DNA from: Auanema rhodensis
Lineage: Eukaryota; Animalia; Nematoda
Assembly (NCBI GenBank): GCA_964057225.1
Contig: OZ059895.1
Span: 6,014,001-6,078,000, forward strand
DNA length: 64,000 nucleotides
Reading direction: 5' to 3'
Shown piece by piece: positions 1 to 64,000 of the stretch. Position 1 is the stretch's first letter; the number at the start of each line of letters is the position of its first letter. A program made the position numbers and the translations under genes. Below the pieces are notes generated by a model, which saw only the letters and a list, made by a program, of their open reading frames with translations, was not told the origin of the DNA and searched no databases.

Positions 1-3000
1 GAGTTTGCTGTATGAAAACTTTCGTGAATAAAAACTTAGATTCGGATGATAAGCATTTTGATATACTATATGTACTACAATATAATGGAGTGTTATCAGC
101 TTTTAAATTAGGGTAAATTTTAAAAAATAATGTATGGAATACATCAAAGGTGCTGAATTTCAGGAGACTAACTCGATTTGAAAAGTTGTGGTCCACTTAC
201 TTAGGCATAGGTCTTTGTGGTAGCTTTGAAATTTTCCCAGACTATAATCTTTTGGTTGTTGGCGCTCATTACAATACGTCCGGTATGCTGCTTAACCTAC
301 CATATCGAACAACTTGGAATTTTTAGGAAAAGTAAAACCGCCCGGAGGATTATGTTCATTTCGTATGATAGATACATATCCATATGCTGAACCTATTCGT
401 GTGATGGGAGATTCAAGTATAGTTAAATAATTTTGATTTATGGAATTGTTCAAGTTTTAGGTGGATGGTTCAAGTGGTCTAGTCAATTTCTATCTTCAAG
501 GCTATTTGCTTATATATGCTCTATGTCGGTATCTTCATCATTTAATATGAAACTAGCTACTGTGTCTACTAATGGCGATTTTTTTCTATTTGACGTTCCT
601 TCAATGTCTTTATCTTTGAGTATTTCATACATCTCTGGAAGACGTCCAGTTCAGGCTCTTTTCACTGATGAAACAGTAGTTCTAACGAAACAGATGATTT
701 TGTGAATACTTTTTCTAGGAACTGACCATTCTTTTTGATAACGGTGATCTGGTTAGAAGTCAAATTGAAGACATAGAAGAGGAAATTCATGCGAATAACG
801 CTGAATATACGTTTACTAGCCGTACTGCGTTGGTGGTTCCCAGTTTTCGAGAACTTTTTATTTTAGAAGGAGATGTGAGTAATTTCATAACTAGTATTGT
901 GAACACATATCTAAAATCTTTAGCCTGGTAGCTCTGCTCTACATGAAGTTGCTAATCAAAGAACTCACTTAGCTTTTCGTTTGTGGGTGTACACGATTTG
1001 GCGCTCATTTAAACAAGTAAAAATAGTTCTAGTTTAGATGTTTTTAAATTCACATTTAGCTTGTTGGAATGGCTGTTGGAGATGCAGCATCCCCTCTACA
1101 AATGGCAACACATTCTGAAACTTTAGGTTTCGTTGTGTGGCATTCTCCTACTCGAACTCTAGAAGAACTTTTAGAACGAACTGTAAGTTTGTTTTAATGT
1201 TTCAGTATTTTATAATATTTGATTTAGCTTAATGAGAGGAATTATAGCAGAGCAAAAGAATTAGCCGAGTCATTTTCAGCAGCAATTGATATAAATATAA
1301 TTCTAAAACGAGAATGGACAGATACTTCAAACTCTGGTGATTTAACTGTTCAACATGTTCACGATATTTTGGTATGTGCAATTAGGTTTATTAATATTTA
1401 CTTATATTTCAAGGAGAATATTGATGATCAAGAATGGGTACTTCGAGCTTGTTTATCTTGCCGTTCCACTATTCGTGATGTTCACATAGAGTTAGTTCTT
1501 CTCGGTGAGTTTATATTATTGTTCTAAAGTATTATATAATTTATAGGATTGAATTTGTTTGACATTAGTGATGATTGCAAAATCATTATTTTACATGTTG
1601 CTCGAATTTTAAATGTTTGCTCCGATGTCGAGCTTTTCTTGGAACTTCGACATAAATCATTGTTCGAGATAGCATGTTGTTTCGCGCAGGTTTGCATGAG
1701 TATACATTATAAATAAATTATTATCTTCAGAGATGCTTATTCACAGAACTTCAACGGTTATTGGAACAAAATTTTTGTTTATTATCTGATTTTGTTTTGA
1801 ATATTGCATCCTTGATACCATGTAGTGTCCCTCCTAAGAAATATGAATATTTATTGCCTTCTTCATCGTGGACTTTCAAAGATATTGAAGAAGTAACCCT
1901 TATATATTCATTTTTTGTAATCACTTATGTTTCAGATTGGAAGTGATTATGTAATACAGCTGTCAGAATTTAAAAATAGTCCGGAATCTGACTATGTGAA
2001 CGAACTGAATTTTGGTGAAACGGTTATCAAGTATATAGTTGTATATTATGTTCAGTTAACATTTATGTTATTCTAGACCTGAAAAACAGTATTTAAGTTG
2101 GGTTATGAAAAAGATTCAAGAAATAGACAATTTCACTCTTGTCGATTTTGCTATTGAATTATTGAAAATAAGTATTGAAAATGGATTTGAGGTTTAGTAA
2201 CTTTAACATACAACTTATAGAGCTCTCTATTTCAGCAATTAAAAATAGACTTAGTTCCGTGGGAATTTTACAGGGCTCATGGAGTGATTTGCGGACTAAT
2301 CGATCAGAACTTCGAAAGTTTTATGAATATGACTGCTGATGCTTCTGTCGAACAACTGATTTCGGTAATAATGATGCATAGTTTATTTGTAGCTAGCTTC
2401 TTTCAGCTAAATGTACCAGAATTGATCAGCAGTTCGTCTCAAATTGTAAAATTTTTGGAATGGAAATTAAACGATGATTCCCTAGTAAAGACTTATATTT
2501 TCCAAATATTGGAATCCGCAACTCGTAAAGATGTCAAAGCCCTTCAACATTTCCGTAAAACCTATTCTAAATACGTAGATACTGATATGGTTAGTTGAAT
2601 CGTGGAGTACTTTTCCACAATTTTTTGGTTTTCTAGATAATCAAATGTCTATGCAATTGTACTTTAACTGGAGAAGATCTTTTGAATGCAGTTCGCTCCT
2701 TATCTGTTTATTCCGAGTTTGTCAGTGCGATCAAAATTTTCTTAGATAGAAATGTTCGGCCCACTTTTGAAAAAATTTGGAACAGTACAAAGGAATTGTA
2801 TGTTTCGGATAATATTGGAATATAGTTGCATTTATTTCCGATTTCAGGCCTTTTGCCAAAGGTCTTCTAATGCAAGTTGCTTGTTGTGGGCAGGCTAGAA
2901 GTGCAGCAGAGTGGGAAATTTTGAGAGATGATCTCGTTCAATTGACTAGTTGGTAAGGGGATATTCATGAGAACTTTTATTCTATTTTTTATTTCCAGTC

Positions 3001-16823: not shown

Positions 16824-17958
16824 TTAAACTATCGTAAGAATATTTTCAAGGTAACGATCCTGGTACGTTGCCAGGGAACGGAAAGGACAAGGACAGTATC
16901 CAGCATCTCGCCCAGGAGCTCCTGGAGGACCATCCTGAGAATATTATTACATTTGTTTTACTAAACATTATAACTGACCATTCCTGGTAAACCAGGGATA
17001 CCATCTTCTCCTGGCCTACCGGGTTGTCCTCTTGGGCCTGGTGGTCCCGGATTACCTGGTCTACCTGGCTCGCCTGGAACACCGTCTCGTCCGGGAGGGC
17101 CAATCTTGCCAGGTGGCCCACGAGATCCAACATTTCCATATACTCTTAAAATTAATTTAATCAATGTAAGTGAAAGGGTCAAACTGTTACCTGACACCAT
17201 CTCGGCCTGGAGGACCTTTACAGCCTGGTCTTCCCGGTTTACCATTCTCACCTGGGGAACCAGGTAAGCCCGGTGGGCCGGGGTATCCGTCTTCTCCATC
17301 CTTTCCTGGAAGACCAGGAACTCCGGGCGGACCAACCGGTCCTGGTATTCCTTTAGCTCCGGGCGGTCCTGGAGGCCCAGCTGGACATAAGATACAAGCG
17401 TTGTAATTCATAACTCCTAAAATAAAGCATTACAACAGAGAAAATTTAGAAGCTGTTACCTTGCATTGAAAGTGGGACACCGCTTTTACCCGGTATGCCA
17501 TCTGGACCATCAGGACCAGGCAATCCATTTTCTCCATCTGGACCTGGTTCTCCTGGTAGTCCTGGAGGACAGGCTTTTGAAATATCACATATGCTAGTAG
17601 GGTAAGGAGCTACGTTGTATCCGGTAGGGTACATCCCATTTCTAAAGTCTATGTTACTACGAAACTTCTAGAAATGTGGAACGAACTTTACATTACGAGC
17701 TTTTCTTTCTTTTTCAAAATTATCAAATATGATATTAATTTCATGTACAGTATTCTGAAAAAGGAAAAAAAAATATTGAAATATCATTTAAAAATGAATG
17801 AAAATGAAATATACCTCATACTCATCAATATAAAAAATTGAATTTTCACGTAATTGTTCACCTAATGTTCTCATATATTGAAGGAAGCACATACATAATA
17901 TATTCAATGTTAAACATATAATTAAGCAAAAAATTGAAAAAATTTCTTTTTTTTTCAT
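16824..17958 (-). CDS. Nematode cuticular collagen
   Basis: N-terminal hydrophobic segment, RKAR furin-type site, Cys cluster, interrupted Gly-X-Y blocks and C-terminal [10 protein letters not shown] motif. Confidence 0.95.
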
Positions 17959-18126: not shown

Positions 18127-18143
18127 CACCCATATAAGGTACG
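18127..18143 (+). promoter_or_regulatory. snRNA-type proximal sequence element (PSE) of SL2 RNA copy a
   Basis: CACCCATATAAGGTACG at -58..-42 of the leader start. Same motif and spacing upstream of SL2 copy b and U1. Confidence 0.75.
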
Positions 18144-18184
18144 TTTAATTATTTTATAGGACTTGAGGATTCATTGATATCGTT

Positions 18185-18292
18185 GGTTTAAAACCCAGTA
18201 ATCAAGGTATGTCTGGGTTTCCGAGATATCGTTTTTTCGATTAATTTCGGAATAGTTTTTGGAATTTCCGTTCGGGGTTATCCGGATGGTAT
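18185..18292 (+). ncRNA. SL2-type spliced leader RNA, copy a (leader GGTTTAAAACCCAGTAATCAAG)
   Basis: 22-nt SL2-like leader followed by a GTATGT donor. Stem I AAACCCAG/CTGGGTTT, stem II TTCCGAG..TTTCGGAA, Sm-like AGTTTTTGG, stem III capped by GGGGTTATCC as in C. elegans SL2 RNA. Confidence 0.9.
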
Positions 18293-18753
18293 TAAGGAAT
18301 TTGGGAGTTTAATGGATTTAAACCTAGTGTGCACATATGTGTAGATTTATATATATAGTTACTTATCAGTTATTAATTATATATTGAACTATGCTTTGAC
18401 ATAAAAAAGACGCTCAAAGAAATATTTTATCTTTTGGCGCAGAATTTTCCGACGACAGGTGCGAATAAGATCTCCTTTTAAGCCAGAACAAAATATTTCA
18501 AAATTTCAAATTTCAATGAGGAAGAAGGATTCAAATCTTTTCTATCATCCTAAGCCAACGATGACTAAGCAATATTAAACTTTGCATAGATTTCTTCTGA
18601 TTTTGTTAATTTTCTGATCTGTGCTCAGTTATGAATAGCATAACCCTAGTGTATACTTGATAGGATTTTATATTGTTGTTGTTAAAATTATTTTTTGTTA
18701 TATCATATTAAACCTTCTATTCAATCAATTTTTTGTTTTCAAATGTGATTCAG

Positions 18754-18770
18754 TACCCATATGAGGTACG
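18754..18770 (+). promoter_or_regulatory. PSE of SL2 RNA copy b
   Basis: TACCCATATGAGGTACG at -58..-42 of the leader start. Confidence 0.75.
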
Positions 18771-18811
18771 TTTAATTATTTTATGGGATCTAAAGATTCA
18801 ACTTCTTTGTT

Positions 18812-18919
18812 GGTTTAAAACCCAGGAATCAAGGTATGTCTGGGTTTCCGAGATATCGTTTTTTCGATTAATTTCGGAATAGTTTTTGGAATTTCCGTTC
18901 GGGGTTATCTGATCGGATG
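18812..18919 (+). ncRNA. SL2-type spliced leader RNA, copy b (leader GGTTTAAAACCCAGGAATCAAG)
   Basis: Near-identical to copy a. Differs at leader position 15 and in the 3' strand of stem III, which still pairs (TCCGTTCGGG-GTTA-TCTGATCGGA). Confidence 0.88.
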
Positions 18920-19030
18920 TAAGGTTTGTTTGTAATTGCAGTGCATTTGCCACATGATTAAATCGATGAATCATAGACGTTGACATACTCGGTTCCCCAA
19001 GAGGGAAAGCCATATGGTCTAGCAGCGGCG

Positions 19031-19047
19031 CACCCATAGCAGATACG
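19031..19047 (+). promoter_or_regulatory. PSE of U1 snRNA
   Basis: CACCCATAGCAGATACG at -57..-41 of the U1 start, matching the SL2 PSEs. Confidence 0.7.
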
Positions 19048-19087
19048 AAGCAAGATAGGGTTAAGACATTATTTGGCCATAGCTCAT

Positions 19088-19248
19088 AAACTTACCTGGC
19101 TGGGGGTTGTTCGCGATCAAGAAGGCGGACTCCCTACGAAGAGGCCTGATCATTGCACTTTTGATTGGGCTGACCTGTATGGCAATCTCGAGTTGAGATT
19201 CGCCAACAGCTAAATTTTTGCGTTTGGGGATGCGTTCGCGCGTCCCTT
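19088..19248 (+). ncRNA. U1 snRNA
   Basis: 5' AAACTTACCTGG, loop I GATCAAGAAG (U1-70K site), loop II ATTGCAC (U1A site), Sm site AATTTTTG, terminal stem GGGGATGCG-TTCG-CGCGTCCC. Confidence 0.97.
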
Positions 19249-19402
19249 ACAAGAGTACAGACAAAAGATATGTTGTCGAGTTTGTTGGGGAAAGGGTTTT
19301 TCAAATTTTTTGAAGCAAATAAATAAAATTTACAAAGTTGTATAAGTTATATATAATTAATAATGATTTTAAAATATTTATTGTTTATATAATTATATAA
19401 TA

Positions 19403-21551
19403 CTACTTATTTGGTCTGAAAAGTGGAGAAGTATCCGTGTAAGGATTATTATATGTATTACTTTCGCTTGAATAAAAATTTGCCTCTGTAGTATATACAT
19501 TGTCTTCTTCTTCTTCAAAAGGTGCTGCAGGTTTACTGATGAATAACTCGTTTGGATATGTAACTACTTCATTTGAATAAGGTGTTGAATCATAAATTTC
19601 CGGTTTTTGTGATGTTGTAACCTTCACATAATATCTAAAAATCAAAATTCAAATTTGAAGACATTGTAGTTAAATCGGAATAAAACAATTTCATACCTAT
19701 ATGGAGTGGTTGGATATGTACTTGTTTCTGTTTGAGTTCCTTCGTTATAAGGTACTGAAGCTGGTGCTTCTTCGATTTGTGGCTGGTATGTGGCTATAGG
19801 TTCCGGAGATTGAGGTAAATATAACGATTCCGGGAAATATTCTGGAAAATATCTTCCCACATTGTATTCTTCTATCTCTGGGCATTCACAACGTCCGCTT
19901 TTAGATCCAGAGGATCCTGGATTTCCTGGCTTAAACAGAAATAGTTTCTGGCACGTATGATGATATTAATTACCGATCCAGGTGCACCAGGAGGACCATC
20001 AACTCCAGGCTTTCCAGCAGGACCGGGATCTCCAGGAATACCTGGTGTTCCTGGAAGGCCACTTCCTCCATCTTGACCCGGCTGTCCAGGCATACCATCT
20101 TCTCCAGGTTTTCCAGGAGGACCAGGTAAGTTTATGTAACGAACACTGTCGCGACCAGGTTGTCCCGGAGGACCAGGCAGTCCGATTTCACCATCGAGAC
20201 CTGGCTCTCCTGGATACCCTCGTGCACCTTCAGGTCCTGGCTTTCCCGGCTTGCCTGGCTCACCGTCTTCTCCTAAATAGAAATCAGCAAAGGTGCTTGC
20301 ATAGTATTTTATTGTTCACCTGTTGGACCACGATTTCCTGGAATACCTACAGGGCCTTCGGGGCCAGGAGGACCCATTGGACAGATGACACAACCCAACT
20401 GAAGAGAGTATACCAAATATGATTAAACACTTGATCTTACTTCAATAACCACATCATCTTCTCCCAATGTCCAATCAGTACCATTTACACCAGCAATTCC
20501 ATCATAGCCGTTTTCACCTGGTTCTCCAGGTTCACCTTGTTCACCTGGAGGCCCAGGGCAATTAGGTAATTCGCAGCCTGACAAATGAAGTAATATTTAA
20601 GAACATTGAGATATTCATACCACATATCGTTAAAGTAGAATAATAATTTAAATATTCTCCATGCTGTCGATAAGCTTCTTCTATATCGACATCTTCTTCT
20701 TCTGAACCACTTTCATCATCAATTTGGTCTTCTTCGTCGGTATTGCTTGGTTTTGTTGTTTCAGCTTCTGACGATCCCAATTCAATTGCCGTACCTTCCT
20801 TAAATACATATTATTATTTTAAAATTTAAATAGTAAAATCTGAAAACGAACCCCAGCGGTGATACGGCCTTCTGCTCCTTGTACTTCAGCAGACTCTTTA
20901 GCAATTCCCTCTCCTGAAATATCAGGAGGCGATATTTTAGTTCTAATTCTTTTCTTCTTTTTCTTCCTTAATTTTTTTTTTCGAGCTTTTCTTAATCTTT
21001 CTTCTTCAATTTGTTCTGCTATGTATTTTCTTTTTGGATCTTGTATATCTTTGATTTCTTCACTGTTACCGTCAACATTAAAATCGTTCTCATTAGTATT
21101 ACTTTGAATTATAGGTAAATGTTTCTTCTCAAGTAAAGCTGACTGAAAATCCAATTTCCTTCCAGTGCGGTCGTCAAAATAATGTGATTCCTTTCTTCGA
21201 TGTTTTCTCTTTGATTTGGATGAGCTTGGAGATGGACGTGGTATAACATACCATCCATAATTTGAATTTGAACGTCTTGTTCTTAATTTATTTTTCTTTA
21301 AAATTTCATTCCATGCTTGTGATTCAATTATCTAAACATATAATAATAATAATAATATGTATATTATATTCGTATAGTTAGTATATATTTTCAAATAAAC
21401 TTACCGCAAACTGTTTCATTTCACTTAAACCAATCTCATGAAAATGCTCCATTTCTTTCATTATTGAATGAAGATAACAGATCAGAATAAGTATTGCTGG
21501 TACAGCTAAGCCAGCAGCTACTATAGCAGCGATTGTTGGCCGACTAAGCAT
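19403..21551 (-). CDS. Atypical long cuticular collagen with extended charged N-terminal region and Pro/Tyr/Thr/Glu-rich C-terminal tail
   Basis: [27 protein letters not shown] transmembrane segment, RTRR site, Gly-X-Y exons at about 19900-20560, tail exons 19403-19860. Confidence 0.9.
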
Positions 21552-29394: not shown

Positions 29395-29546
29395 TTTCAT
29401 TAATTTATAATTTTGTGCATTCATGATCTCTCAATTGAATATTTATATATTTTTTTTGTTTAAATCATTCCGATTTCGGTATTATGAACAATGCGAGTAA
29501 ACTTTAACTTGTACATTTCAAATTATTTCCTTTAGAAGAATTGCAA

Positions 29547-32238: not shown

Positions 32239-33266
32239 ATGAGCAGCTCAGAGGAGGTTAGCTGGATTACTTGGTTCTGTGGTCTCCGTGGGAATGAATT
32301 TTTTTGTGAGGTATAATCGAGTTGTTCTAACATTGCCCTATTTTGTTTTGTGTAGGTAGATGAAGAGTATATTCAAGACAGATTCAATTTAACTGGATTA
32401 AACGAGCAAGTTCCTAAATACCGTCAAGCCCTCGACATGATTTTAGACCTTGAACCAGGTTTTTATTTTTTCCATTTTTTATGAATTGAACATAAACTAC
32501 AGAAGATGATATAGATGAGAATCAAACAGCTACGGATCTAGTTGAACAAGCAGCTGAAATGCTTTATGGTCTTATTCATGCTCGTTACATTTTGACTAAT
32601 CGAGGAATTTCTCAAGTATGCTTTCTGTATAACTATTTTTATAAGCATTTTGTAATTAGATGGTAGAGAAATGGCGCGATCATGATTTTGGAGTATGTCC
32701 TCGTGTGTATTGTGAAAATCAAGCTATGCTTCCAATTGGTTTGTGCCCTCAGTTAAATTTTCTTGAATTCCTATTGTTTGCAGGTTTGTCTGATGTGCCA
32801 GGTGAGGCTATGGTGAAATTGTATTGTCCTCGTTGCTGCGATGTGTAAGTTGCATATTAACGCTTTCAGAAATATTTCTGTTTCTTAGATATGTCCCTCG
32901 TTCTACACGCCATCAACATACTGATGGCAGTTATTTCGGTACCGGTTTCCCTCATATGCTCTTCTTCGTACATCCCGAGTTTCGTCCAAGTAAATGTGCT
33001 ACTCAATTCGTGCCTAGGTAAAAGAGAGTTTCACTTCCGTTAAATTTTTATTTTCATTCAGACTTTATGGCTTCAAAATTCACCCTACAGCTTATGCTTT
33101 ACAAAATAGGCATGCACCGTTTATACCGGTAAAAGTTTATTAATTTTGAGAGGTTAATTATTTATTTATTTACTTTTAGCACCAACTTTCAACACAACAG
33201 CCCATTCAATCTTTAACTCCAGCACAAAACGAAAGTTCTGGAGCACAGTTTTCCTACGGTGTTTAA
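32239..33266 (+). CDS. kin-10: Casein kinase II regulatory beta subunit
   Basis: [51 protein letters not shown] zinc ribbon, [11 protein letters not shown]. Confidence 0.98.
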
Positions 33267-44207: not shown

Positions 44208-44354
44208 AAATTCTGAACGTTTTTCCATATAAAACACGACTCGTTTTCAGAATAAATAGAAATAGGTAAAAACCGCACATATATCATAACGCATATAGAA
44301 AATAGAGATTTATTGATATAAAACAAAACAAGAACAACCAGTATAAATAATTAA
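44208..44354 (-). promoter_or_regulatory. Operon intercistronic region rbpl-1 to fcp-1 (poly(A) signal, U-rich tract, trans-splice acceptor)
   Basis: 147 nt between stop and ATG. Minus-strand AATAAA at 44314-44309, U-rich TACCTATTTCTATTT, GTTCAG acceptor 5 nt before the ATG. Confidence 0.75.
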
Positions 44355-47300
44355 TTAAATTTTAAGGGTAATTTTTTTCCTTAGCAGCATTTCCGCAGGA
44401 GGAGGCGAAAACGTCTCTCGAATCCTTTTCTCATTTATGACAACCTCAACAAAACAAGATTATTGAAAAACTGAATAAATACTAGTTTACCTTACCCCGT
44501 TTTCGTTCAGAGGTATGAATATGATCACTGTCATCTTGCTTCTTATGCTTTATATCTCTGTCATCTCTTCGCTCTTTGTCATCGCGACGATCCCTCTCAT
44601 CTTTACGTTCTTTATCATCTCGACGATCCTTTTCCTCCTTACGTTCTTCACGTCGACTCTTTTCTTCACGTCGACCCTTTTCTTCACGTCGACTCTTTTC
44701 TTCACGTCGATCTTTTTCTTCACGTCGATCCTTTTCTTCACGTCGATCCTTTTCTTCACGTCGATCTTTTTCTTCACGTCGATCCTTTTCTTCACGTCGA
44801 TCCTTTTCTTCACGTCGATCCTTTTCTTCTCGTCGATCCTTTTCTTCTCGTCGATCCCTCTCTTCTTTTTTATCTTTCTCATCACGTTGATCCCTCTCTT
44901 CTTTTTTATCTTTCTTATTATTATCATCTTCTTTCTTTTGTGGCTTTTCATTCTTAGAATCAACTGGTTGTTCTTTCTCATCAACTTTCAACGATTTTTT
45001 TTCTTTCTTCAACCGCTTCCTTTCCTGAAACAAAACATTCTATATTAGTCAATACAAACTCTTTAGGAATACTTTTCTTTCTTCTTCAGTTTCTTCCTCA
45101 TGTTTTTTTTTATGACTCTTCTTCTTCTTGTGCTTCTTTTTATCTCTATCACGTTCACGGGATTGGGATCGATGCTTTCTGAGAAAAAACAATATAAAAT
45201 AATTAGAGTTTAATAATTCACTTATGCTTATGCTTTTTATTCTTCTTCTGCTTTTTATCTTCCTTATCATCATCATCTTCATCGCAATCTTTCGTGTTTT
45301 CTCCGGGAGTTCCAGGATCACTATCTTCCTTTGACGAAGAAGCGACAGCATTCAACTCTTCATCAGTCTTATCTACTTCTTTGTCAGAGAATACCTCCGA
45401 TGGCTTTTCATCCTCAGCCTGAGGTTCTTCCATTTCGATATCAGCTGATTCGTCGTTCTTCAAACAATATTCACTATTATAAAGATTAAAGCCCAACTAA
45501 CCGTGTCCATCTCGTTATGAGAGTCCTCATCACTTTTAATTTTATTCATTTCACCACAATCTTTTAGTACATTATCAATATCAGCTTCATCATATTCTTC
45601 TTCAACTGATTGGATTTTCTTTTCTTTTTGAGGTTGCTTCTCAGAATCCGAGCGATCACCGGTTTTCTTCTTTTTGTACTCTCTTCTACTGTCACTACTT
45701 TCTCGCTCACGTGACTATAAAATTGTTGATTATAAGTAAAAATCAATTTTGGTTTACCGAATATCTCCGATAAGAACTGGAATGTGATGTTCTTCCCCTA
45801 TCTCTAGAATCCCTAAAAATTTCATTCAGAGTTATATAAATATATTGCTCACCTATCATCATAACGACTAGAAGATTTCCATCTATCGTCTTTCTTGCGA
45901 TCTCTATCCCTATCACGATCCCGATCCCTGTCTCTGTCCCTGTCTCGGTCCCTGTCTCTATCACGGTCTCTGGCACTTCGTACGTAACGCTTATCATCTC
46001 TACTGGATTTATCACGACGACGTCTTCGATCAGGAGAAGAGTCAGAAGAACGAGATCTACTTCTATAAAAAACAAAATTTTCTTGAAAATATCATCACCT
46101 CACCTTTTGCGTGTTCTATTTCTATCTTTATCTCTGCCATCATTTCTAGCCAAAAATGCTTCCCAAGTCTCTAAAAATTGTGTACCCGTATTGACATTGT
46201 TAAGCATATGTGTAACATTTGAAGGCGGAGGGCGAGAAAACCTGAACAGTATTCATAAAATACATAATAACAAACGAAACATACATTGGATTCATGATAT
46301 TTTGTTGAACCGGTATACCTATTCCAGGAATTGGAGGAAGAACAGACATTACAGGTATGGGATTGCTCACACCAGGAGGACAGAGTGTGTCCGTGGTAAC
46401 ACCGGGAATTACAGGGGGTGGTTGATTAAACATTTGCTGAAAATGACACAAGTTACAAGAACATTACAAATAATACTCACAGGAATAACAGGAGCAGCCA
46501 CGACAGGAGCAGCTACGACAGTTGCCACAGGCTGTTGCATAATCAAATCTGTATTAGCACTAACAGTAATGGGTTGAACTTGTCGGCCATCAGTAATCTA
46601 TACAGAAACATTGAATTAGAAAACATAATAAAAAAGATAATATACCACGGTTGTGGGTATAACAGATTTGATAGAGGTTACAGGAATAGGAAGGGTTGTA
46701 GTTGCACCCGATTGTAATCCAATTCTAAAGAAAAATTCGTATTTTAAAAAAGTTTAACGTTTTCTCAAAAATACCTGATTCGAAGAGGATCATTAGTATC
46801 AGGGATTGAAGATACAGCGGGCACTACAGAAGGAATCACTGTAGTAGTAATAATAGGATTTGAAACAGGAATAGTAGGTTGAGAAACTATAGGAAGAGCA
46901 GTAGCAGTTGGAACAGATACAGGAAGGGACGTTGGAGTGCTTGGAGCAGGTGGAGTAGCAGCGGCAGAAGAAGAACTTGGAATATTGTTAAGCCAATTCT
47001 GAACTGCTTGTCGAACAGTTACATTCGGAACGATAGCATCAACAGAGAGCTAAAAAAATTAAATGGGGTAAATTAAAACTAAAAGAAAAGCAATTACTTG
47101 TTTTTGAGTACATGTAGGACCTGGACAAGTTCTCTCTCCCGTTTCTGAATAATTGTCGAAGCTTTGTTGAATGCAATAACTACAGAAAGAATAACCACAA
47201 CAAGTCGCCAATACAGCATCCTATACCACATTGAATTTAAAACTATATAAAAAGCTCAACAAAGTAACCTTCATAATATTTTTACATATTGGGCATATTA

Positions 47301-49874: not shown

Positions 49875-51025
<1,151 letters not shown>

Positions 51026-51567: not shown

Positions 51568-53843
51568 CTAGTAAAATCTAAGGGCATGCTGATTACCATT
51601 TAAACAGTGACCAGCTCCAAAATGTTGAGAACTTGAATTGCCTCTAGAAACAATATTCAAATTCTATAAAGCGTTCTATCGAGTTTACCTATTATGTGAA
51701 TATTTCTGAGAGTAAGAATTACGGGATTGGAAAGGAAGACTTCTAAAATTTTGGGCAATATAGCTGAATTTTGCATTCGACTTTGATTTTCAGAAAACAA
51801 CTTACCGGGGCTGGCTTGAATAATATTCTTCTTCTAAAATGGTAGGGATACGAGGAGCATTTCTCATCAACGGACGATGTAGATCAAACCCGGACCCGCG
51901 AGCGTGACGAGACTGAACGTGGCGTGACTAAGGATACAAAACACGTTCCCAAATTAAAAAGGAATAACATACCTGCCAACAAGAATGGCAGAAATAACGG
52001 AAACAAGCACGATCTCGACAAAAATATGGTCCTGGAACTCTGTTGCACATCATGCAAGGAGCATCTTCCAAGAAAGGGTCGATTTGAACCTTTTTTCCTG
52101 GAAATAATATAAACATTAACGAAAAAACGAGTCTTCAAAAATGTTTTTTTCAATAATAACAAAAAGCCAAGTATGCAAGTTTACATACCAAATTTACTAG
52201 TTTTGATTTCCAGGAAAGCAGATTCAATAGCTCGGAAGTATGAAGAATGTGAACGGAAAGTAACTCGACCACTACCTGAATTGAATACAACAAATGTTGA
52301 CATCAAAAACAAGAAAATGTCACCTATGGGATATTTATACTTATCTGTATCAATTCCAACAAAAACAACGTTTCCATACAGTTCTTCCATAATTGAATAC
52401 AAAACGTTAGCTGTAATCATTCCATGAAGCGCACCAACAAATACCTAGATAGCGTTAAGTTATTATAACAGCATTTTAGCTAATCTTACGGTTTTCTTAG
52501 CATCCAAACGACAACCAGGATCAGCAACATAAGAGGCATCGGAAACAACCCATGGAATAATTTGGACCTAAAAATCAGACAGACAATAAGACGTTGTTAT
52601 CAGAAGGGTACCTGACGAATTTCAGTTGTTTGGTTTCTTCGAGCTCTAAGTTTGAAATACCATTCGCCAGCTGACCCAAACTCCTGAAAATATAGATTAT
52701 TATACGGTTTCAAGATATCAGAAACCTGAGAGCAATCTTTCAACAGAGATTTCACAGAAGTTTCATATTCAAAGATCATATAAACGTATCCAGTAGCCTG
52801 AAAAAAAGCACGAATCTTAAAATTGTAAGAAATTAAAACTAGCCTTTCCTCGTGGAGAATCTCTCATCTGCGAACGAGAATATCTGGGTTCTTTACCAGG
52901 CCATTCTACATGACAGGCTCCATAAACACTAAAGGCTTCCATGAGGGCGTCCTCAGTGATATCCCATGGAACTGAAGTTTCAGAAACTAATTACAGTAAT
53001 TCATAATCTAATATTCACCTCCACCAACAAATATTTTGCATGAAAAAAGTGGATGACTATAGTTTCTAGGAGGAAGTTCGCCATTCCAAATGTAGGCAGT
53101 CCTCTGAGGTCTTCTACTAATTGTGTTCACGTGCCCAGCTGCTTCTCCTGTCATTGAAGGAGAAGTAACAACCTATAATGCAAACAAATGAAAGGTATTT
53201 GAAAAATCTATATCTTACCGACTCATCTGAAGATGTGTCATGTCTGTAAGTTGGTGCACTTGGTTTCACGGGTTCGGGTGGATAATTCTATAAATTCACA
53301 GCTTTCAATGAAATTACGAAAAAAATAAACCACTAATTGCATAAAAATGTACTGTCTTTGTTCCTTAGTCCATTTGGAACAATCACTAGGCAAACTACCA
53401 ACGAACATGGATTCATGGTCAATGTTAGGCAAATTCATTTGATTTTGCTGTCGATTCTAAAAATATAGATTCAATGGTTTTAAAATACAGTGTTCTACCG
53501 GAGGAGTAACGCTCAACTCTTCTAGTGATTGAACTACATCACAATCTTTACAATGATTCATGGATTCCGCTCTCGGCATAGCAGCACTGTCTTCTAAACC
53601 AAAAATTCTAGAGTGAATAGCTGGAAATTTATATACTACCAGATATCTTTTCTAGCGACTGATCAGGAGAGTTGCTATTGATCTCTTCAGGGTCACAATC
53701 GAATGCCTCCAACTTGCTTTCTTGCTCGTCATGAAAGCATGTCGATATTTAGTTATTAAACAAAGTATGCTTACCGAATAACTGTTGGAATTATTCAAAA
53801 CACTCTCCGGAGCGGACAATAAATAATTACAATTTTGATCCAT
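51568..53843 (-). CDS. cpb-3: Cytoplasmic polyadenylation element-binding protein (CPEB1/Orb-like)
   Basis: [51 protein letters not shown] finger [20 protein letters not shown]. Confidence 0.92.
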
Positions 53844-54285
53844 GATTACAATATTTTATTACAGAATTTCGTAATCTGTAAATTACAATAATAATAACAA
53901 ACAATGAGATATATTTCTTTAGTCACCTCCTGTACGATAAAATGCTATTTTAACTATTACTAAAACCTAACGATGTATCAACTGAAATATTCGGAAAATA
54001 TTTGAATAGATAAATATAAATTAAGCTTAATTAAGAAAAACATATTGTCCATTTATAAATCAATACTTTTCAGAAAAAGTAGGATTTCATCCAATTAGGA
54101 CCTTTTTAAAGACCTTAATGGTCCTTGAACTTAACCGAAATTACCTGTTTAAATTTTAAACATATCTACATGGAGCTGAGTATCGATGCGACATTGGAGG
54201 AGAGAGATTTAATATTTTATTTTAAAAAATTTGTACACGCAATAAAATTGTTTTAATGGCTATATCATGAAGAGACTAGGTCATT

Positions 54286-57200
54286 TTACCAGAACGGGCA
54301 CCATCCTATATAGGCTTGGCATAAATTTTCTGCAAGTGTAGCTTGTTCTATAAGTTCATCTATTTGATGTTTCACTGAAATCTCTAAAGGATCCGAAATA
54401 TAACGGCCAGCTGGAAGTGGGTGAACTCAAGACAAAAAATGTGGCTCTAAAATACCTGACAACTTTTCGTTAATTTTTTTCATAACCTCTTCCGAGACGA
54501 TTCTAGGTGCTTCTCTTTGAGCAATTGCAGTTTTCTTTCCATATTCCTTCTGTTGTCCGGGATCCTTTTTCGTTCCTATAATCCCGTAATTTTATTCAGA
54601 AAGCCTATTTAACACTACCGTCCAAAAGACGCCAATTAATCACAGGATCATAAACAAAAGCTTCCAATACAGCTAGTAAACTTTCCTGAAAATAAAGTTT
54701 TCTTAATAGTAGTAGCAGAACTCACCTTATTTGATCTCAAAAGCGATAAAACTTGCTCACAGGTAAATCTGTAAATGCCATCAATTCCTGTGACTTCCAT
54801 AGCCTAAATACGGAGAGTGAGAGTTGTTTTTTTTATTTGAATATTACGTTGATCAGCATTCGAGTTAACCTGAACGGAACACGCTCGGGGAATTTTTCTC
54901 GAGTCATAGCTACATCGAAACAATCACCAAAATCAATGTGAACTATTTTTCCAGTCAGACGATCCAGCATCAAATTCGAAGGATGTCTGTAGCATTTTTT
55001 ACTACCTTGTACACTTAAATGGGATGCATACCGATCTCCCAATCCGAGAATATAACCAACCATTGACATACAAGCGACAGAGCGTGTGTAATTTGTGCGA
55101 CGATCAAACCATACTTCGGAGCTAAACATTAAAATACAAAGTCTATAGTTTTAGATCGTAATACCTAGGACTTTTCAGCCAAAGAATCTTACGCAAATCG
55201 TCTCCAGGGTTATGATTCAGAGCACTTTGAAAAACTTGCATCTTAAACACAAAATAAGGCAGATATATATTTGCAATATACCTTTTGCATGATTGTTAAC
55301 TGATCAGTATCCGGAGCAAACTGTTGCATCAATTTATGTTCTTGTGAAAGCGAATGTTTCTTTTTCTCTCTATAATCTTTAATCATGGAGTGCAGTGTAT
55401 CACAATTTGGAATCCATCCTATCAGACCGGAATTTTGGCTAAGTGCGGTAATGGAGTATCTCTGGAAAATTTCATTTCTGATGCTAATGTATTGTAGGTT
55501 TGAAACTTCAATGGTTAAATTTCGTCTACACGTTTCCGCATTATTTACAAGTAGAGTATTTACTAATCCAAACAATTGCATGACTCGTTCATCTTGTCTG
55601 GGATCTTCATGACCCTTTAACAAGAAGGTATATTCCAAACCATTACTTCCTGAACAAATGTAAATCTATTGAAAATTTTCATTAATTTTATCAACCTCGC
55701 ATAGTCATTTTCCTAGGTCTTTGTTTACTGCTTATAATACTAAGATGTGTTCCAACAGAAGATATTTTTATAACAGGTGAATTAGGATCATAAGTTCCAG
55801 GTACTGCTAATTCTAGATTCTAAAAAACATTCATTTGAAAGCCTGCCAATGAAAACTAAAAGTAACCTTAGATCTCATTAGCTGAGGACTAACATAATTC
55901 AAATCTAATGAACTTAATTGCCGAATTTGTCCAGCAATGCGTTTAAAGATCTAAAAAATTTCTGATTTTTTGTAAATAGCAGCCATCTGTAACCTGGCAG
56001 TAAATCTCCCAGGCTTGAGAAAGTTCTTTCTGGTTCTCATTTTTTTCATAAGCTAAACAGAATTTAAAGGCATCTGTGAGATCAGCGTAGTAAGTCTATA
56101 ACAAATATACTAAAAATTAAAGTTTAGCCATATAACAACTTGATTGAACGACTGTTCCTTTAATGTACTGGAACCAGCATCAATCATGTCATGCATTGGC
56201 CTAAGGATTTCCATCATAGCTTTGAAATCCTTTTCCTGAATAAACAAAATAACAATATCTCGGAAAACCCAAGAACCTGGAAGTACAATCTACTGGCATC
56301 ATCTAAAGCATCATGCCATTGCTCATGCCACAAAATTGCACATCGAACTAATTCTTCCGAAACCAATCTAGCCTAAATTGCGAAAGCCTTAATTTTTGAT
56401 AATTGACAAAAAAATGCCTCATCAACTAAGCGGCTATGTATTTCGCCCATCATATGTAACATCTCTTTGGCATTAGCTGCACGATTTTGATTGGTTGACT
56501 TCGAAGCAACAGTAAGTGCATAAACGAGAGCCTTAAAAATAATTTGCATATGAAACACTCAGACGGGAAATTAATATTGAAAATATATTCACAACGAACT
56601 TACTTGAGGTCTGGTTTTCGAAACCTCATGGATAACTTGCTTGATCAGTACTGCCATTTTGTGAGTGGAATCCAGACGTGCCATAAGTTGAGGAACAACC
56701 TTCAATAGAATGACATTAATGGGAATTTAAAAAAATATTACTTCAAGCCATGTTTCCACAGGAAGTCCTTTAATACTTTCTCGAAGTTGAGTGTATACGC
56801 TATCATCTTCGCCATAGTCGAACCATAGTTGGAGCAAGCGAAGGGTGTCCTCTAATCGAGAACCAGGAGCAAGCATAAGAGCTTTAGCGAAACAGTGAAC
56901 GGCGTTCTTAGCATGGTACAGGCAAGGTTTAACCTACAAGATTAAAACAATTAAATAATTTAGATAATATTGAATTAACCGGAACAACAGGCTGTATTGG
57001 ACTCAAGGATCGGTGGTCCATATACATCGTTCCAGGAATAGGAATGTCTGAATATATACAATAACAATTTAATTATTCACAGCAAACCATTCAAATCAGC
57101 TGACAAGGGTTGTGGTACCATGATTGATTGATGCATGCTTTCGGGAGTTCGATTATAAGAGAATTTTTGAACTAACACTTTTTCTCTGTTCATAGCATGA

Positions 57201-60200
57201 AGATGTGCACATGCTAGCTTATGCCACGCCTACAGTCAACTTAAAAAAAAGAAAAAGATTGTTTTAAATACCTTATGCCATTTCTGATCATACTCTGTTG
57301 CTTTTGTATAACAAGCAATTACTTTTTTGGATACTTCCAATTCGGCCGGCGACATTAACGATGCAGGCTAGACCATAATATTTTTTATTAAAAAGCCTAA
57401 TATGGAACATACTTCATCCATCGTTGATTTACTCATAGCTTTCATAGTACCATGATGACTCTTATCATATTCCGGAACTATAGAACTTCTTCCAACACTC
57501 TAGATTGGAAAAATCATAAAAATTTTGAATTAGCGAAATTACTCTATTCTTTTCATCTTCAATAGATAATGCTTCTGTCCATTGTGCCAGTTTCAAAAAT
57601 GCTTTTGCACAAAGTCTAGAAGCTTCAGATGTATGATAAATAAGAGGTTTGTCTAGTTGTTTCACAAGTGTGTCTAAGGTGTTAACTGCACATTGCTTAG
57701 CATTATCGATCCATAATTGCTTACAGTAAGCTAAGACCTATAAAAGAAGGATTACAGTAACGTTATTAAGTCCAAGTACTAGCCAGTTGAGGCTTGTCAC
57801 TGGGAATGGTTGCTTTTTCCATTGGTGTGTCAGGGGATATGTTCAATAAATCCCTTAAAACTCCTCGACACATAGATAATTTTCCTTGTTGACGGCAAAG
57901 CGAAGCAAATTTTACACGTAGTGGATGCATCTCTTGAGGAGAGAGCACGAGCGAACTTAAAAAAGTTTAACTCAGAAAATAATTATTTCTCTGAGACATA
58001 CCGTAGCATCAAGAGACGTTGCCAATGTTCAATATTTTGGCTGCAACCTTGAAGACGTCGACTCCACAGCAAAGCAATTCGTGGTCTTCGTTCAGGACGA
58101 AGCTAAAGTTGATGTTTAAAATTATATTATATCTGTGACCTACTTTATATTCGATAGCTTCCTCCAATTCTGCTAATTGCTGCACTTGAATCATAGCGCC
58201 GTAAGCTCTTTCATAACTTTCACTAGCCATTGCTGTCAGCTCACTGTCATACATATCCCGAACCTGAAATAGAGTGTAATATATATTAGTAGAGCATCAA
58301 ACAAACTTTATTGATATAATTAGTAGCTTGGATATAATCCTCATTGCGAACTGCCAGAACAGCTCGTAATAATGCTCCATCTTGACTATTTTCGTTGATT
58401 TGTTGAACATATTTACTCATTTCATCCCAGTTACCTGAACAAGAAATAAATGAGATTTTTTAAACTATAGCAGCTTCTATTTACCAACTGCCCAAGCACC
58501 GCGAGAAGCAATAACAGTTACTTTCTGATCTTTCCCGACCATGGTTCTAGCTCTTTTGTTTAATTCTGACCAACTGCAATGATTATATTTTAAAAACCGA
58601 AAAATTACAGTTATGCCTTACTTTCCTAAAGCCTCCAGGCATCTTAATTCATGAGCTGTAATTTCTTCATAATTTCGGCGATATTCAGCAATATGAGCTT
58701 CGCTATCAGGATACTTATTTTCACTCAAAATAGCAATATTCTTCTCATATGTGTGCCTATCTTTCTATAAATAAAAAAAATTTTAAAAAAAAGTTTTATT
58801 CAAATACCTCATAAGATTCTAGAGCTTTTTCCCATTCATTAAGTTTTTCATACCATCTACCTTGCATCTAAAATATTTTCAGGAGTGATGAAGTTCAAAT
58901 AAAAAAGTATTCAGCATACGGGAATCTCAATTCTTCTATACTCGGCATAGCGAACAACTCCAGCTGCCTCTTCGTGGACATTCAATTTATTTGCAAAGCT
59001 AAAGAAAAAAATATTAAATGCTTAAATGTTATACTCAGTACGTGATCAAAGACTGGCAATCTTCAGAATGCAGATTATTCTCTCGTTTGCTGTCAAGAAT
59101 TTCATTTTCCGTGTATCGTAGGCCTTTAGCATAAGCCTTAGTTTCTTCTGCACTTCTTCTTAACGTTTGATATCCAATGGGTAATGGTCCCTGCAAAGCA
59201 ATATAGTACGGATTAAAATAGTGAATGATGTGTACCTTCTCAGAATGATCCATAAACTCAGCTAGGTTCAAAATTGTCTGAATTACATCAGGGTGATCAC
59301 TGTGTCGAAGAGCATAGCTGAGTGCATTTGTTACGGCGTCTTGATCTGGCTGTTTCAATTCAGTCCACACAGACATGAAGGCTGCATTGAAAATATTTCT
59401 GAAACATAGTTTCTAAGAGTTTTTGTACACAACACTTACTTAGCCAAGTGAGGATAGATATCACTAACTGATGCTGCCGCTCGAATAGCAGCAGAACTGC
59501 CTGATTTAATAAATGCTAATCGAAGCTTAATAAGCCATTGAGACCAGTCTTCTTTTGAGCTAAGATCATCAACACGCCATGCTTCTGATACTACTTCAGC
59601 ATTCAGCCGTTGCTTATTGACAGCTTGACTATACATTTGAGCATTTGTTGGTTGCCCTTTCCGAAGACGATAATCTGGCTAAAAAATGATACAACTGTGA
59701 AATCGGATCACATTAAAAATCGGAACCTCAGCCACTGCTTTCGTGCCATCACCTCGCTTTGGACGTTGGTTATCCGGAGATGACATAACCGTTTGATAAC
59801 ACTCTAGAAGTATATAGTGAAAACAATTGTTTCTATGTGTTAAAAAACAAACCTATATATTGATTATAAAAATTGCTATTCAATAAGCCATGCTTTCTCA
59901 ATTTATGATCAACAAATCGTTTAAAGACTTCGAAATTTTTCCACATCTGAATAAATTGAAAGCTTATATTATTATTAACTTAATTTACCTGTAGAATAAC
60001 AGCTTTAATCAAATCTAAAAGAAGGTTTTCTAATTGTTGATTTTTGAAAAGATTCATTTCAAAGCACTTGAACCACGTTTGCATCAAACGTGGAGCAAAA
60101 TCGGAAACATCACTACGTTCAATTATATATAACACAGTCTCTGAAAAGATTATACAACTTAACTTTTAAAAAAAGAGAATAATACCTAATGCTAATTTTT

Positions 60201-63200
60201 TAACAGTTAACGGAACAGCAGCTTCTTCAATAATGGAAAGAACAGGAGGTAGAACAAGTTGTAAATGAGGTGTCAAACAATCAGATAATGATTTTACACA
60301 AGCAAGAACCTAAATTGAAAATATAACTATCAAAGAAACCTGGAACATACTTGAGATGTAATTTTTCTTTCGGAATCACGATCAGCTTGAAGAACTTGTA
60401 ATAAATAAGGAATGAGCTGGGCAACATGAGGTGAGAATTCAGATTCTAAAGCAGTACCAATCTGCTCTAATACACTAACTATAGTAATTTTTATGGTACT
60501 GTTTTCAGACCAGGCTTCCTAAATTGCAAGAATAATTAATTTGTATACTGAAAGCTTTAACTCACCGCAATCAATGCAAAAAGTGCTGGTATATAAGGCT
60601 TCGCATGATTTTTAATTATTCCAACAAGACTGGCCAATTGCCGCAAGAAAAATTCTCTTTGTGAAGGCCTATCTTTGCAATTCCTTGTTACTTCAATCAG
60701 ACGAGGAACAACCTAAATTTCCAGAAAATATATTTATAAAAATAGTGTTACTGAATGACCTGTTGAACATATTGAGGATATGTATCACCCAAGCTTCTGA
60801 AAATTGTCAACAACGCTTGAGCAATTTCTTGATAGTGCTGAATAAGTGCTTTGTCTTGGACCTGAAACCAGCACTAAGCAAAAACGTAAGAACAATATTT
60901 TACCATGATCATCAAGTTAGCAATAGTAATTGCTGGATAAAACTCTTCTAATGTGCATTTCTCATAGTTGAACCATTGGATAATATCTAATTATGATAAT
61001 ATATATGAAACTAAGAGTAATGATGAAAGTAAAACCTTGTCTCGGATCAGTAGAGTCGTGATTACTGCTAGGTTTAGATAAAGCCATGCTAATACGAGTA
61101 GATGACTGAACAGATCCAGTGAAAACCTAGAAACATTTTTCTAGTACACAAAATAAATACAAAACTTACCTTATGAGTGTATGGATCTATGGCTCCTAGG
61201 ATTCCTAAGACTTGAATAGCCTGACGACGCATACTAGAAGACATTTCGGTTTTCAGTAATCGAAGAATATCATCTAAAAGATTAGGATAGTCGCGATATG
61301 GATCAACTACATATGCTGTAGCTCGACACATTCTTCCAATGCACTGTAGTGTTGCCTAAACATTAAGAATAATGAATCAATTAAAAGTAATTTATCAATA
61401 CTTCTCTTCTTTGTAAACTGCTTGATTCAGACACTAATACAGTTAGTTGGCTGAATAGCGGTTCAATACATTTAACTACTTCGGAACCACCAACAACACA
61501 AAGCTCTGAGATAGCATGTAGAACTTGAACCGTAACGTCAACATGCTGAAATGGAAATAATTTGAAAAAGACAAAGTTGGGTGTTTACCTTTTGCTCTAA
61601 TCTCAACTTTGGTAATAATGCTGTAAATAATCCACCTAAATAAGGCCTCATAAACTTTGGATTTTGCCTAGCAATTTGTACTAATAAGCGAGCACTATGC
61701 TGTTCAAGTCTAAAATGCTACTGATCATTTTCAAATAGAAGACTAAGAAAATACCTTGACTGTCCACTATTACTTAGCTGATCTAAAGTTTCCAGAAGAA
61801 CACGACGAAGACGTGGGAGCACCAAAGCAGGATTAATTTCAGATAATCGGCCGACTAGGCTGACTGCTGCTTCCTGCATATCAAGCTTCTCGTCATGCAA
61901 GCTCATAAAAAGAAGTTCGAGCATTTTTGGCTGAGCAAGATGTGATAAAAACTGATTGTCAGCTTCCACAAAACATTTAAATACGCATAGTCTAACGACA
62001 AGCTCTTAAAATAAGTATTTGATTTTATAATAGATTCATGTCTAACTTTGATCCATAACTCCGACACTAACTAAGCACTTTAAAACTCCATGAATAAGTT
62101 CGAGAACCCATTGTCGATGTTCTCGGTGGACACTGGTGAAAACTTGAATGAACGGACGAAGAATGTTGGTACAGCAGCGAACAGCGGCTAATCTAACAGG
62201 AACAGAATCCGCCAAAAGATAACCCTACAGACAATATTTCATAAAAATATATTTCTTAATAAAAACCTCAGCTATATATTGCATACACATTTGTAAGGAG
62301 TGCCGTTGGAACTTAAAACTACCAAATGTTTCTAAAGCCAACACTTTATCGTTTTCATCTTTGCCAGGCTGAAAAATAGGAACTAAGATAATCTAAGGCA
62401 GTTAGTATTGTAATACCTCAACAGTGATCACTGTCGACGGTAAAATTGGTTTACGGGGAGGATCAATTTTAGCAGGTAATGTTTGTCCTGAACATACTAT
62501 ATATACATACGACATCATATAAATGTTAACCTGTTAAAGTTTTGTATAAAACTTTCATTAAACCATCTTGAACATCAACAATCAATGCTGGAATATTACT
62601 AGTAATTTCGTGAAGAAGTCCAGTTAATCCTTGTGATAAGGGTAATTTAAGTAAATTATCAAGAATAGCTTTAATTTCGTTAGATGCGTCAGCTTTATAG
62701 GCTCGAACATATAACTTGAGGTAGGTAAAGACTTGGACATCGACATATTTTCTGGAACATAACATTTGAAAATTAGAAGTAATTCAGTTACAAACTTTTG
62801 TGACCCGCTATAAATTATATCATGGCATTTGGTTGTGATTTTCTTCGCCTTTGTAGCAAACTTGTCAGGCTGCTGTAGAATGATGAGACCTAATGATATG
62901 AGCGCTTTGGACAAATGACTTCTTTCCCACCTTTAAAAATGCATTATTAAATACATACATGTTGAAAAAAATAATATTACATAGTTTGCATTTGAGTGAA
63001 AAAATGCATTCTCTGTTCAACTAAACAACAATTTTCGAACGCCGATAATCGAGGGAGAAGCTCAAGCAAAACGGACTGCAAGAATTCAGATTCATATATA
63101 TTCAGCAAGGACTTCACAATTTTACCTGGACATGAACATTATTAGATTTTTCTATTCCAGAAATAGCTCGCACGATCTAATAATATTTACAATTACTAAT

Positions 63201-64000
63201 TGTTATATATATATTCATTTACCTTAGTAAAGTTTTCTCTAACCAAACCTTTGGCAGTGGTACTCTCTACAGTAACAGAAAATCTTGAAACAAAATATTT
63301 TTTATTGTTTTAGAACAGGCGCCTACCTAGGTTCAGTTAGCCATTCAATAGGATCTTCAATAGAAGATGCTTTACGTTTACTACCTTTAGCTTCTAAATG
63401 AGTCTTTTCAAAATTAGCATCAGCAATACGGAGAAGCTCATTCAATACCTGAACGAAATATTCTTAACCGTTGCAAACAACATTAAATATTATATGTTTA
63501 ATGAATTAATTTCGAAAAAATGTATAATTCATACCAGAAGCATGGAATGAGACCTTTCATCTACAGGAAAGGAATGATGATCGGAGCTTTCATAAGAAGC
63601 AAATGCTTCTTTAATGCACATCTGACAAAGCACTTCATTATTTATATGTAAATTATAAAACTTGCCTGGTACCATTCAGTTTTTTGCTTAGCTTCTCTCT
63701 GAGATGTTATAGTTAAAGCTGCATGGAGCGCTTCTGTAGCCTGGATTCTAATATTGTGCTATAACGGGAAATAAGATTAAACAAACAGAGCAAACGGATA
63801 AACCTTAGGATCACGGATAACAGCGAAAATATTGCGGAAAAAAACATTAGCACGTGAAAAGAAAGAAGTAGATGTGAACATCGCCAACTCTCGAGCTAAT
63901 AAAACAGCGGCTAATCTTCTTATAGAATTCCCACTTGATTCCTATAGACAATTGCTTGTTTTAACTTTACTCTGCTTTAGATACCTGTAACCATTCTAAA
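54286..64000 (-). CDS. let-363: TOR kinase, 5' end outside window
   Basis: HEAT and FAT exons, FRB ([19 protein letters not shown]), kinase LLKGHED..LGLGDRHPSN..HIDFGD, FATC ending [12 protein letters not shown]. Confidence 0.98.

Follow-up and report, generated by a model that had tools for sequence, protein, structure and literature searches.

The window analysed here, a 64-kb stretch of AT-rich, intron-dense nematode DNA, holds two candidate SL2 spliced-leader RNA genes, hereafter copies a and b, followed by a U1 snRNA gene, all on the (+) strand and placed between two cuticle collagen genes of the (-) strand. This arrangement raises the question of why SL2 and U1 genes should be neighbours and, before that, whether the three genes are what they appear to be. 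The two copies form a direct repeat of 170 nt that is 88% identical (18128-18297 and 18755-18924), 627 nt apart, in good agreement with the original prediction of a repeat of about 165 nt at that spacing. As also predicted, the U1 gene begins on the same strand 276 nt past the start of the second leader (19088 vs 18812), that is, ~170 nt past stem III of copy b. The coordinates of the locus are collected in Table 1.

Table 1. Features of the SL2-U1 locus and its flanking genes (positions in the 64-kb window).
Feature	Position	Strand	Remarks
Left cuticle collagen gene	16824-17958	-	Transcribed away from the cluster; ATG at 17958, 170 nt from the first PSE-like element
PSE-like element, SL2 copy a	18128-18143	+	At -57
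AT-rich promoter block	18144-18160	+	Common to both SL2 genes, not found before U1; 31/33 identical including the PSE-like element
SL2-type RNA gene, copy a	18185-18291	+	~107 nt; putative 3' end placed from the fold and the Rfam alignment
Leader exon, copy a (22 nt)	18185-18206	+	GT donor at 18207; spacing as in the SL2 rules (PMC1657053)
Sm-like site AGUUUUUGG, copy a	18254-18262	+	Unpaired, between stems II and III; G replaces the usual A
Stem-loop III, copy a, SL2 motif CGGGGUUAUCCG	18268-18289	+	Compared with the C. elegans sls-2 alignment
PSE-like element, SL2 copy b	18755-18770	+	At -57
SL2-type RNA gene, copy b	18812-18921	+	~110 nt
Leader, copy b	18812-18833	+	Donor at 18834
Sm-like site, copy b	18881-18889	+	
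Stem III, copy b	18894-18917	+	
GC-rich block (54 nt, 57% GC)	18978-19031	+	Upstream of the U1 PSE-like element
PSE-like element, U1	19032-19047	+	At -56
U1 snRNA gene	19088-19248	+	Canonical 5' end, stem I and II loops, Sm site 19212-19220, UUCG-capped stem IV
Right cuticle collagen gene	19403-21551	-	Convergent on U1; stop at 19403-19405

Both repeat copies consist of a 22-nt leader, a GT donor lying within stem-loop I, a long stem II, the site AGUUUUUGG and a stem III, and the RNAs of ~110 nt fold into three stem-loops, the second and third of which are separated by a single-stranded Sm-type site (whole-RNA folding z of -3.6 for copy a and -2.6 for copy b). SL2 leaders follow the rule GGTWW-(3-4)-CCCA-(7-8)-AG and end in AAG, whereas the SL1 leader has spacings of five and six and a GAG ending (PMC1657053). 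In both leaders, 4 bases separate GGTWW from CCCA, 7 more precede the final AG and the end is AAG, as the SL2 rule has it. The motif at the top of stem III, which is needed for SL2 specificity and for association with CstF (PMC7668243), is exact in copy a and carries a single C>U change in copy b, kept as a G-U pair. An SL2 descriptor, which was composed with copies a and b in view, matched the window only twice, at these two copies, and matched none of 60 simulated windows; its match at the repeat copies is not chance. A leader-like 14-mer with 3 mismatches also lies just past copy a (18314-18327, (+) strand), at chance level.

The check proposed with the original prediction, a search with Infernal and the Rfam models, upheld U1 (113.1 bits, above the cut-off) and upheld SL2 in the extent of the match but not in its score. 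The SL2 model (RF00199) was the best non-U1 match for both copies, end to end and over its full length, with 30.5 and 29.2 bits against a cut-off of 41 bits, which is a tool threshold and not a biological definition. A pattern scan of metagenome sequences, which yielded 57 loci, found only three that are SL2-like (L011, L029 and L055). Because L011 scores 36.7 bits with the same model and L029 is missed by it, the Rfam SL2 model appears narrow. The Sm-site variant AGUUUUUGG is present in L011 as well, and L029 carries the same SL2-like gene as L055. In the latter, the SL2-like gene is accompanied by an SL1-like gene that Rfam matches weakly (24 bits), the two lying at 183-255 (-) and 834-933 (+), divergent around a long inverted repeat. 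With RNAalifold, four SL2-like sequences aligned poorly and provided no covariation that could be used. Taken together, the leader rule, the donor, the three stem-loops, the Sm-like site and the stem-III motif support the predicted identification of the repeat copies as SL2-type spliced-leader RNA genes.

Identity between the two copies is distributed very unevenly. It amounts to 20/62 in the upstream flank, 31/33 in the promoter block, 13/24 at positions -24 to -1, 21/22 in the leader, 76/76 from the donor to the stem-III loop, 8/15 (ungapped) in the 3' strand of stem III and 19/57 in the downstream flank, values which agree with the earlier claim that the likeness runs from the promoter element to stem III. 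The 3' strands of stem III were likewise said to differ while still pairing, and both stems do fold (-12.2 kcal/mol in copy a, -10.4 kcal/mol in copy b). With respect to copy a, copy b has a T>G change at leader position 15, and its stem III reads UCUG instead of the UCCG that is invariant in 18/18 C. elegans sls-2 genes; the stem-III changes preserve pairing, from G-C to G-U and from U-G to U-A. Promoter and RNA are conserved around a diverged -24 to -1 spacer, a pattern that recent blind duplication does not produce, and the segment identities can be read as signs of selection. The SL2 pair may have been born by local duplication, its likeness then being kept by selection or conversion.

The U1 gene was predicted to be intact, and this was borne out: it scores 113.1 bits with Rfam RF00003 (cut-off 69.5) over model positions 1-166, and the 5' ACUUACCUG, the four stems, the U1-70K and U1A loops and the Sm site are all present. 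A 16-nt motif, ACCCATA..AG.TACG, has 3 matches in the 64 kb, at -57, -57 and -56 of the three genes, where 0.03 would be expected by chance. SL2 and U snRNA genes of C. elegans share a proximal sequence element (PSE; PMC2527325), and the motif has the form expected of such an snRNA element (PSE-like). With a PSE-like element of its own before each gene, the locus most likely comprises three separate Pol II snRNA-type transcription units. Between copy b and U1, a GC-rich block (18978-19031) contains a small hairpin, is single copy in the window and is surrounded by spacers of 20-33% GC; it may be an upstream element or flanking sequence that arrived together with U1. We also considered, and rejected, a third RNA concealed in 18960-19087, as this segment has no fold (z +0.67), no Rfam match and no tRNA. 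The 3' end of U1 lies ~155 nt from the stop of the convergent collagen gene, and within this interval (19249-19402) read-through from U1 could run into the collagen 3' UTR.

Judged from its sequence, the locus is made of real, well-formed genes of known types; their arrangement is compact and apparently unreported. No report of SL2-U1 adjacency was found in the literature searched, a limited coverage with few subscription papers, which is consistent with the claim that such linkage is undescribed.

Why, then, are SL2 and U1 neighbours? We favour, with a probability of about 0.75, an incidental neighbourhood arising from local shuffling of small-RNA genes, the locus being three ordinary, separately transcribed genes with no coupled function. 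The snRNPs of SL2 and U1 act in trans, and their roles differ, SL2 donating a 5' splice site and being consumed while U1 recognises 5' splice sites. By analogy with C. elegans, SNAPc would bind each PSE-like element, Pol II would make a short capped RNA from each gene, Integrator, known for 3' processing (PMC6390993), would cut the 3' ends, and an Sm ring would assemble on each RNA. Downstream operon mRNAs throughout the genome would receive the 22-nt leader of the SL2 RNAs, with the stem-III motif and CstF as guides, and the U1 product would join the general U1 pool. The U1 gene may have become the neighbour of SL2 via lineage-specific birth-and-death movement of snRNA genes, so that SL2 and U1 would share at most an open snRNA-promoter neighbourhood. 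Turnover of snRNA genes is rapid in Caenorhabditis: among intron-nested copies of C. elegans, only 17% have C. briggsae orthologues (PMC3342880).

The original prediction had instead read the cluster as a functional compact locus supplying RNAs for both trans- and cis-splicing. The separate promoter elements and the differing roles of the two RNAs speak against this claim, as does the absence of linkage in C. elegans: there the nearest SL2 and U1 genes are separated by 1.1 Mb on chromosome II and by 2.2 Mb on chromosome I, no sls-2 gene lying less than 1 Mb from a U1 gene. In the same genome, SL2 genes often lie 0.5-0.9 kb from one another, which makes the SL2 pair itself ordinary. The SL2-U1 combination occurs once in the window. 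Under uniform placement, with assumed copy numbers and genome sizes, SL2-U1 adjacency within 300 nt has a chance of 0.05-3%; some bias must consequently have brought SL2 and U1 together. Counting against the incidental reading are the C. elegans list, devoid of any close SL2-U1 pair, and the Rfam SL2 scores below the cut-off.

The low chance of adjacency could also be taken as a mark of selected linkage, in which SL2 and U1 would share an enhancer, a transcription hub or a read-through precursor balancing trans- and cis-splicing RNAs, for instance in the hypodermis together with the collagens. The single strand, the tight spacing, the common PSE-like element and the GC-rich block between copy b and U1 are compatible with it, as is the mainly hypodermal activity of one C. 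elegans SL2 promoter (PMC2527325). Separate promoters nonetheless speak against a joint precursor, C. elegans has no such linkage, and no U1 was found on the available flanks, short or one-sided, of the three SL2-like metagenome contigs (2 distinct genes); we regard selected linkage as quite unlikely. Its more elaborate form, a selected SL2-U1 unit kept in one rhabditid lineage, with a shared regulatory block co-regulating trans- and cis-splicing snRNAs and with a copy b functionally distinct in its specificity stem, is more improbable still.

Doubt may also fall on the genes themselves. At least one of them could be silent or decaying, copy b being the likeliest, or copy b could be a minor variant of SL2 that is less specific for operons; the changes of copy b at leader position 15 and in the UCCG after loop III, the variant Sm site, the sub-threshold Rfam SL2 scores and the commonness of snRNA pseudogenes all fit. 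Against this, the changes of copy b keep pairing, its PSE-like element and spacing are intact, the RNA body is 76/76 identical between diverged flanks and all U1 motifs are preserved, which leaves silence, decay or a minor variant unlikely, if the least so of the alternatives. That the repeats are SL-like RNAs without SL2 use (SL1-like or another Sm RNA) or a fragment of a mobile element is very improbable. Although the Rfam SL2 score, which stays under the gathering threshold, would allow it, the 4/7/AAG leader spacing is that of SL2 and not SL1, the stem-III motif is SL2-specific, and SL2 is the best full-length non-U1 match of both copies. The high-copy transposon fragment put forward as a refutation is likewise countered: blastn revealed 0 extra copies of the repeat in the 64-kb window, so that it is not a high-copy fragment there, and homology stops at promoter plus RNA.

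The original prediction set the cluster next to several SL2-type operons. Because the snRNPs act in trans, nearness of operons to SL2 genes has no mechanistic meaning. Two operon-like pairs with U-rich junctions occur in the window. One joins a Med18-like gene to DBR1 (29404-29535, (+) strand; Med18 and DBR1 exon matches fall below Pfam cut-offs), with 131 nt from the stop to the acceptor at 29535 and TATTTT at -88. The other joins a DWNN-domain gene to an FCP1-like NIF phosphatase gene (44213-44381, (-) strand) over ~169 nt, with AATAAA 102 nt before the acceptor at 44213 and TATTTT at -92. The C. elegans orthologues of both pairs are presumably neighbours too, and the two pairs are plausible SL2 substrates. 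Other genes of the window encode casein kinase II beta (32240-33250), a Runt-domain protein (50118-50333) and a TOR-like PI3K-related kinase (53000-64000). As for the flanking genes, in the right collagen a long charged insertion follows the N-terminal domain, and the C-terminal tail is long and rich in Y, P and T; no homologues of the insertion exon were found in a length-limited search, in which blanks are uninformative, and an exon of the TOR-like gene gave an equally blank result. These homology searches proceeded one exon at a time. A search of representative proteins with the left-collagen exon returned collagen-repeat matches only and no clear orthologue. Two collagen introns, at ~17145 and 19930 (-), seem from the reading frame to end in AAG rather than in CAG or TAG.

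The genes described here add new members to known families, and their arrangement is mildly unusual, the adjacency being most likely incidental. For annotating operons in Auanema rhodensis, they provide two candidate SL2 leaders, both of which are missed by standard Rfam annotation, and a candidate snRNA promoter element of the species, defined from two RNA classes (SL2 and U1). In addition, SL2 specificity could be probed with copy b, which varies naturally at a stem-III position that is otherwise invariant. That SL2 and U1 adjoin would be of importance only if their adjacency were conserved or under joint control; if not, the locus is another gathering of small-RNA genes.

Compared with known systems, the SL2 genes of C. 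elegans have in common with those described here the 22-nt leader, the three stem-loops, the Sm site between II and III, the PSE promoter and the occurrence of close pairs. The copy a leader is 20/22 identical to those of sls-2.10 and sls-2.11, and 14 consecutive nt of its stem III are identical in sls-2.7. Unlike C. elegans sls-2, the genes have a longer stem II, the Sm site AGUUUUUGG, new leader variants and, in copy b, UCUG, and they form a tandem same-strand pair with a U1 neighbour. The first 21 nt of the U1 gene are identical to the C. elegans U1 consensus, and the loops, the Sm site and the four-stem fold are intact; it differs from nematode-type U1 chiefly by substitutions in stems and by having SL2 as its genomic neighbour. 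Spliced-leader genes also gather with other small-RNA genes elsewhere, in the SL1-5S array of C. elegans, in the SL-U4-U2 clusters of Perkinsus and in Euglena (SL-5S and U3-U5). While the partners here are SL2 and U1, at a single dispersed locus rather than in an amplified array, in all of these systems, as in this one, an SL gene adjoins an unrelated small-RNA gene.
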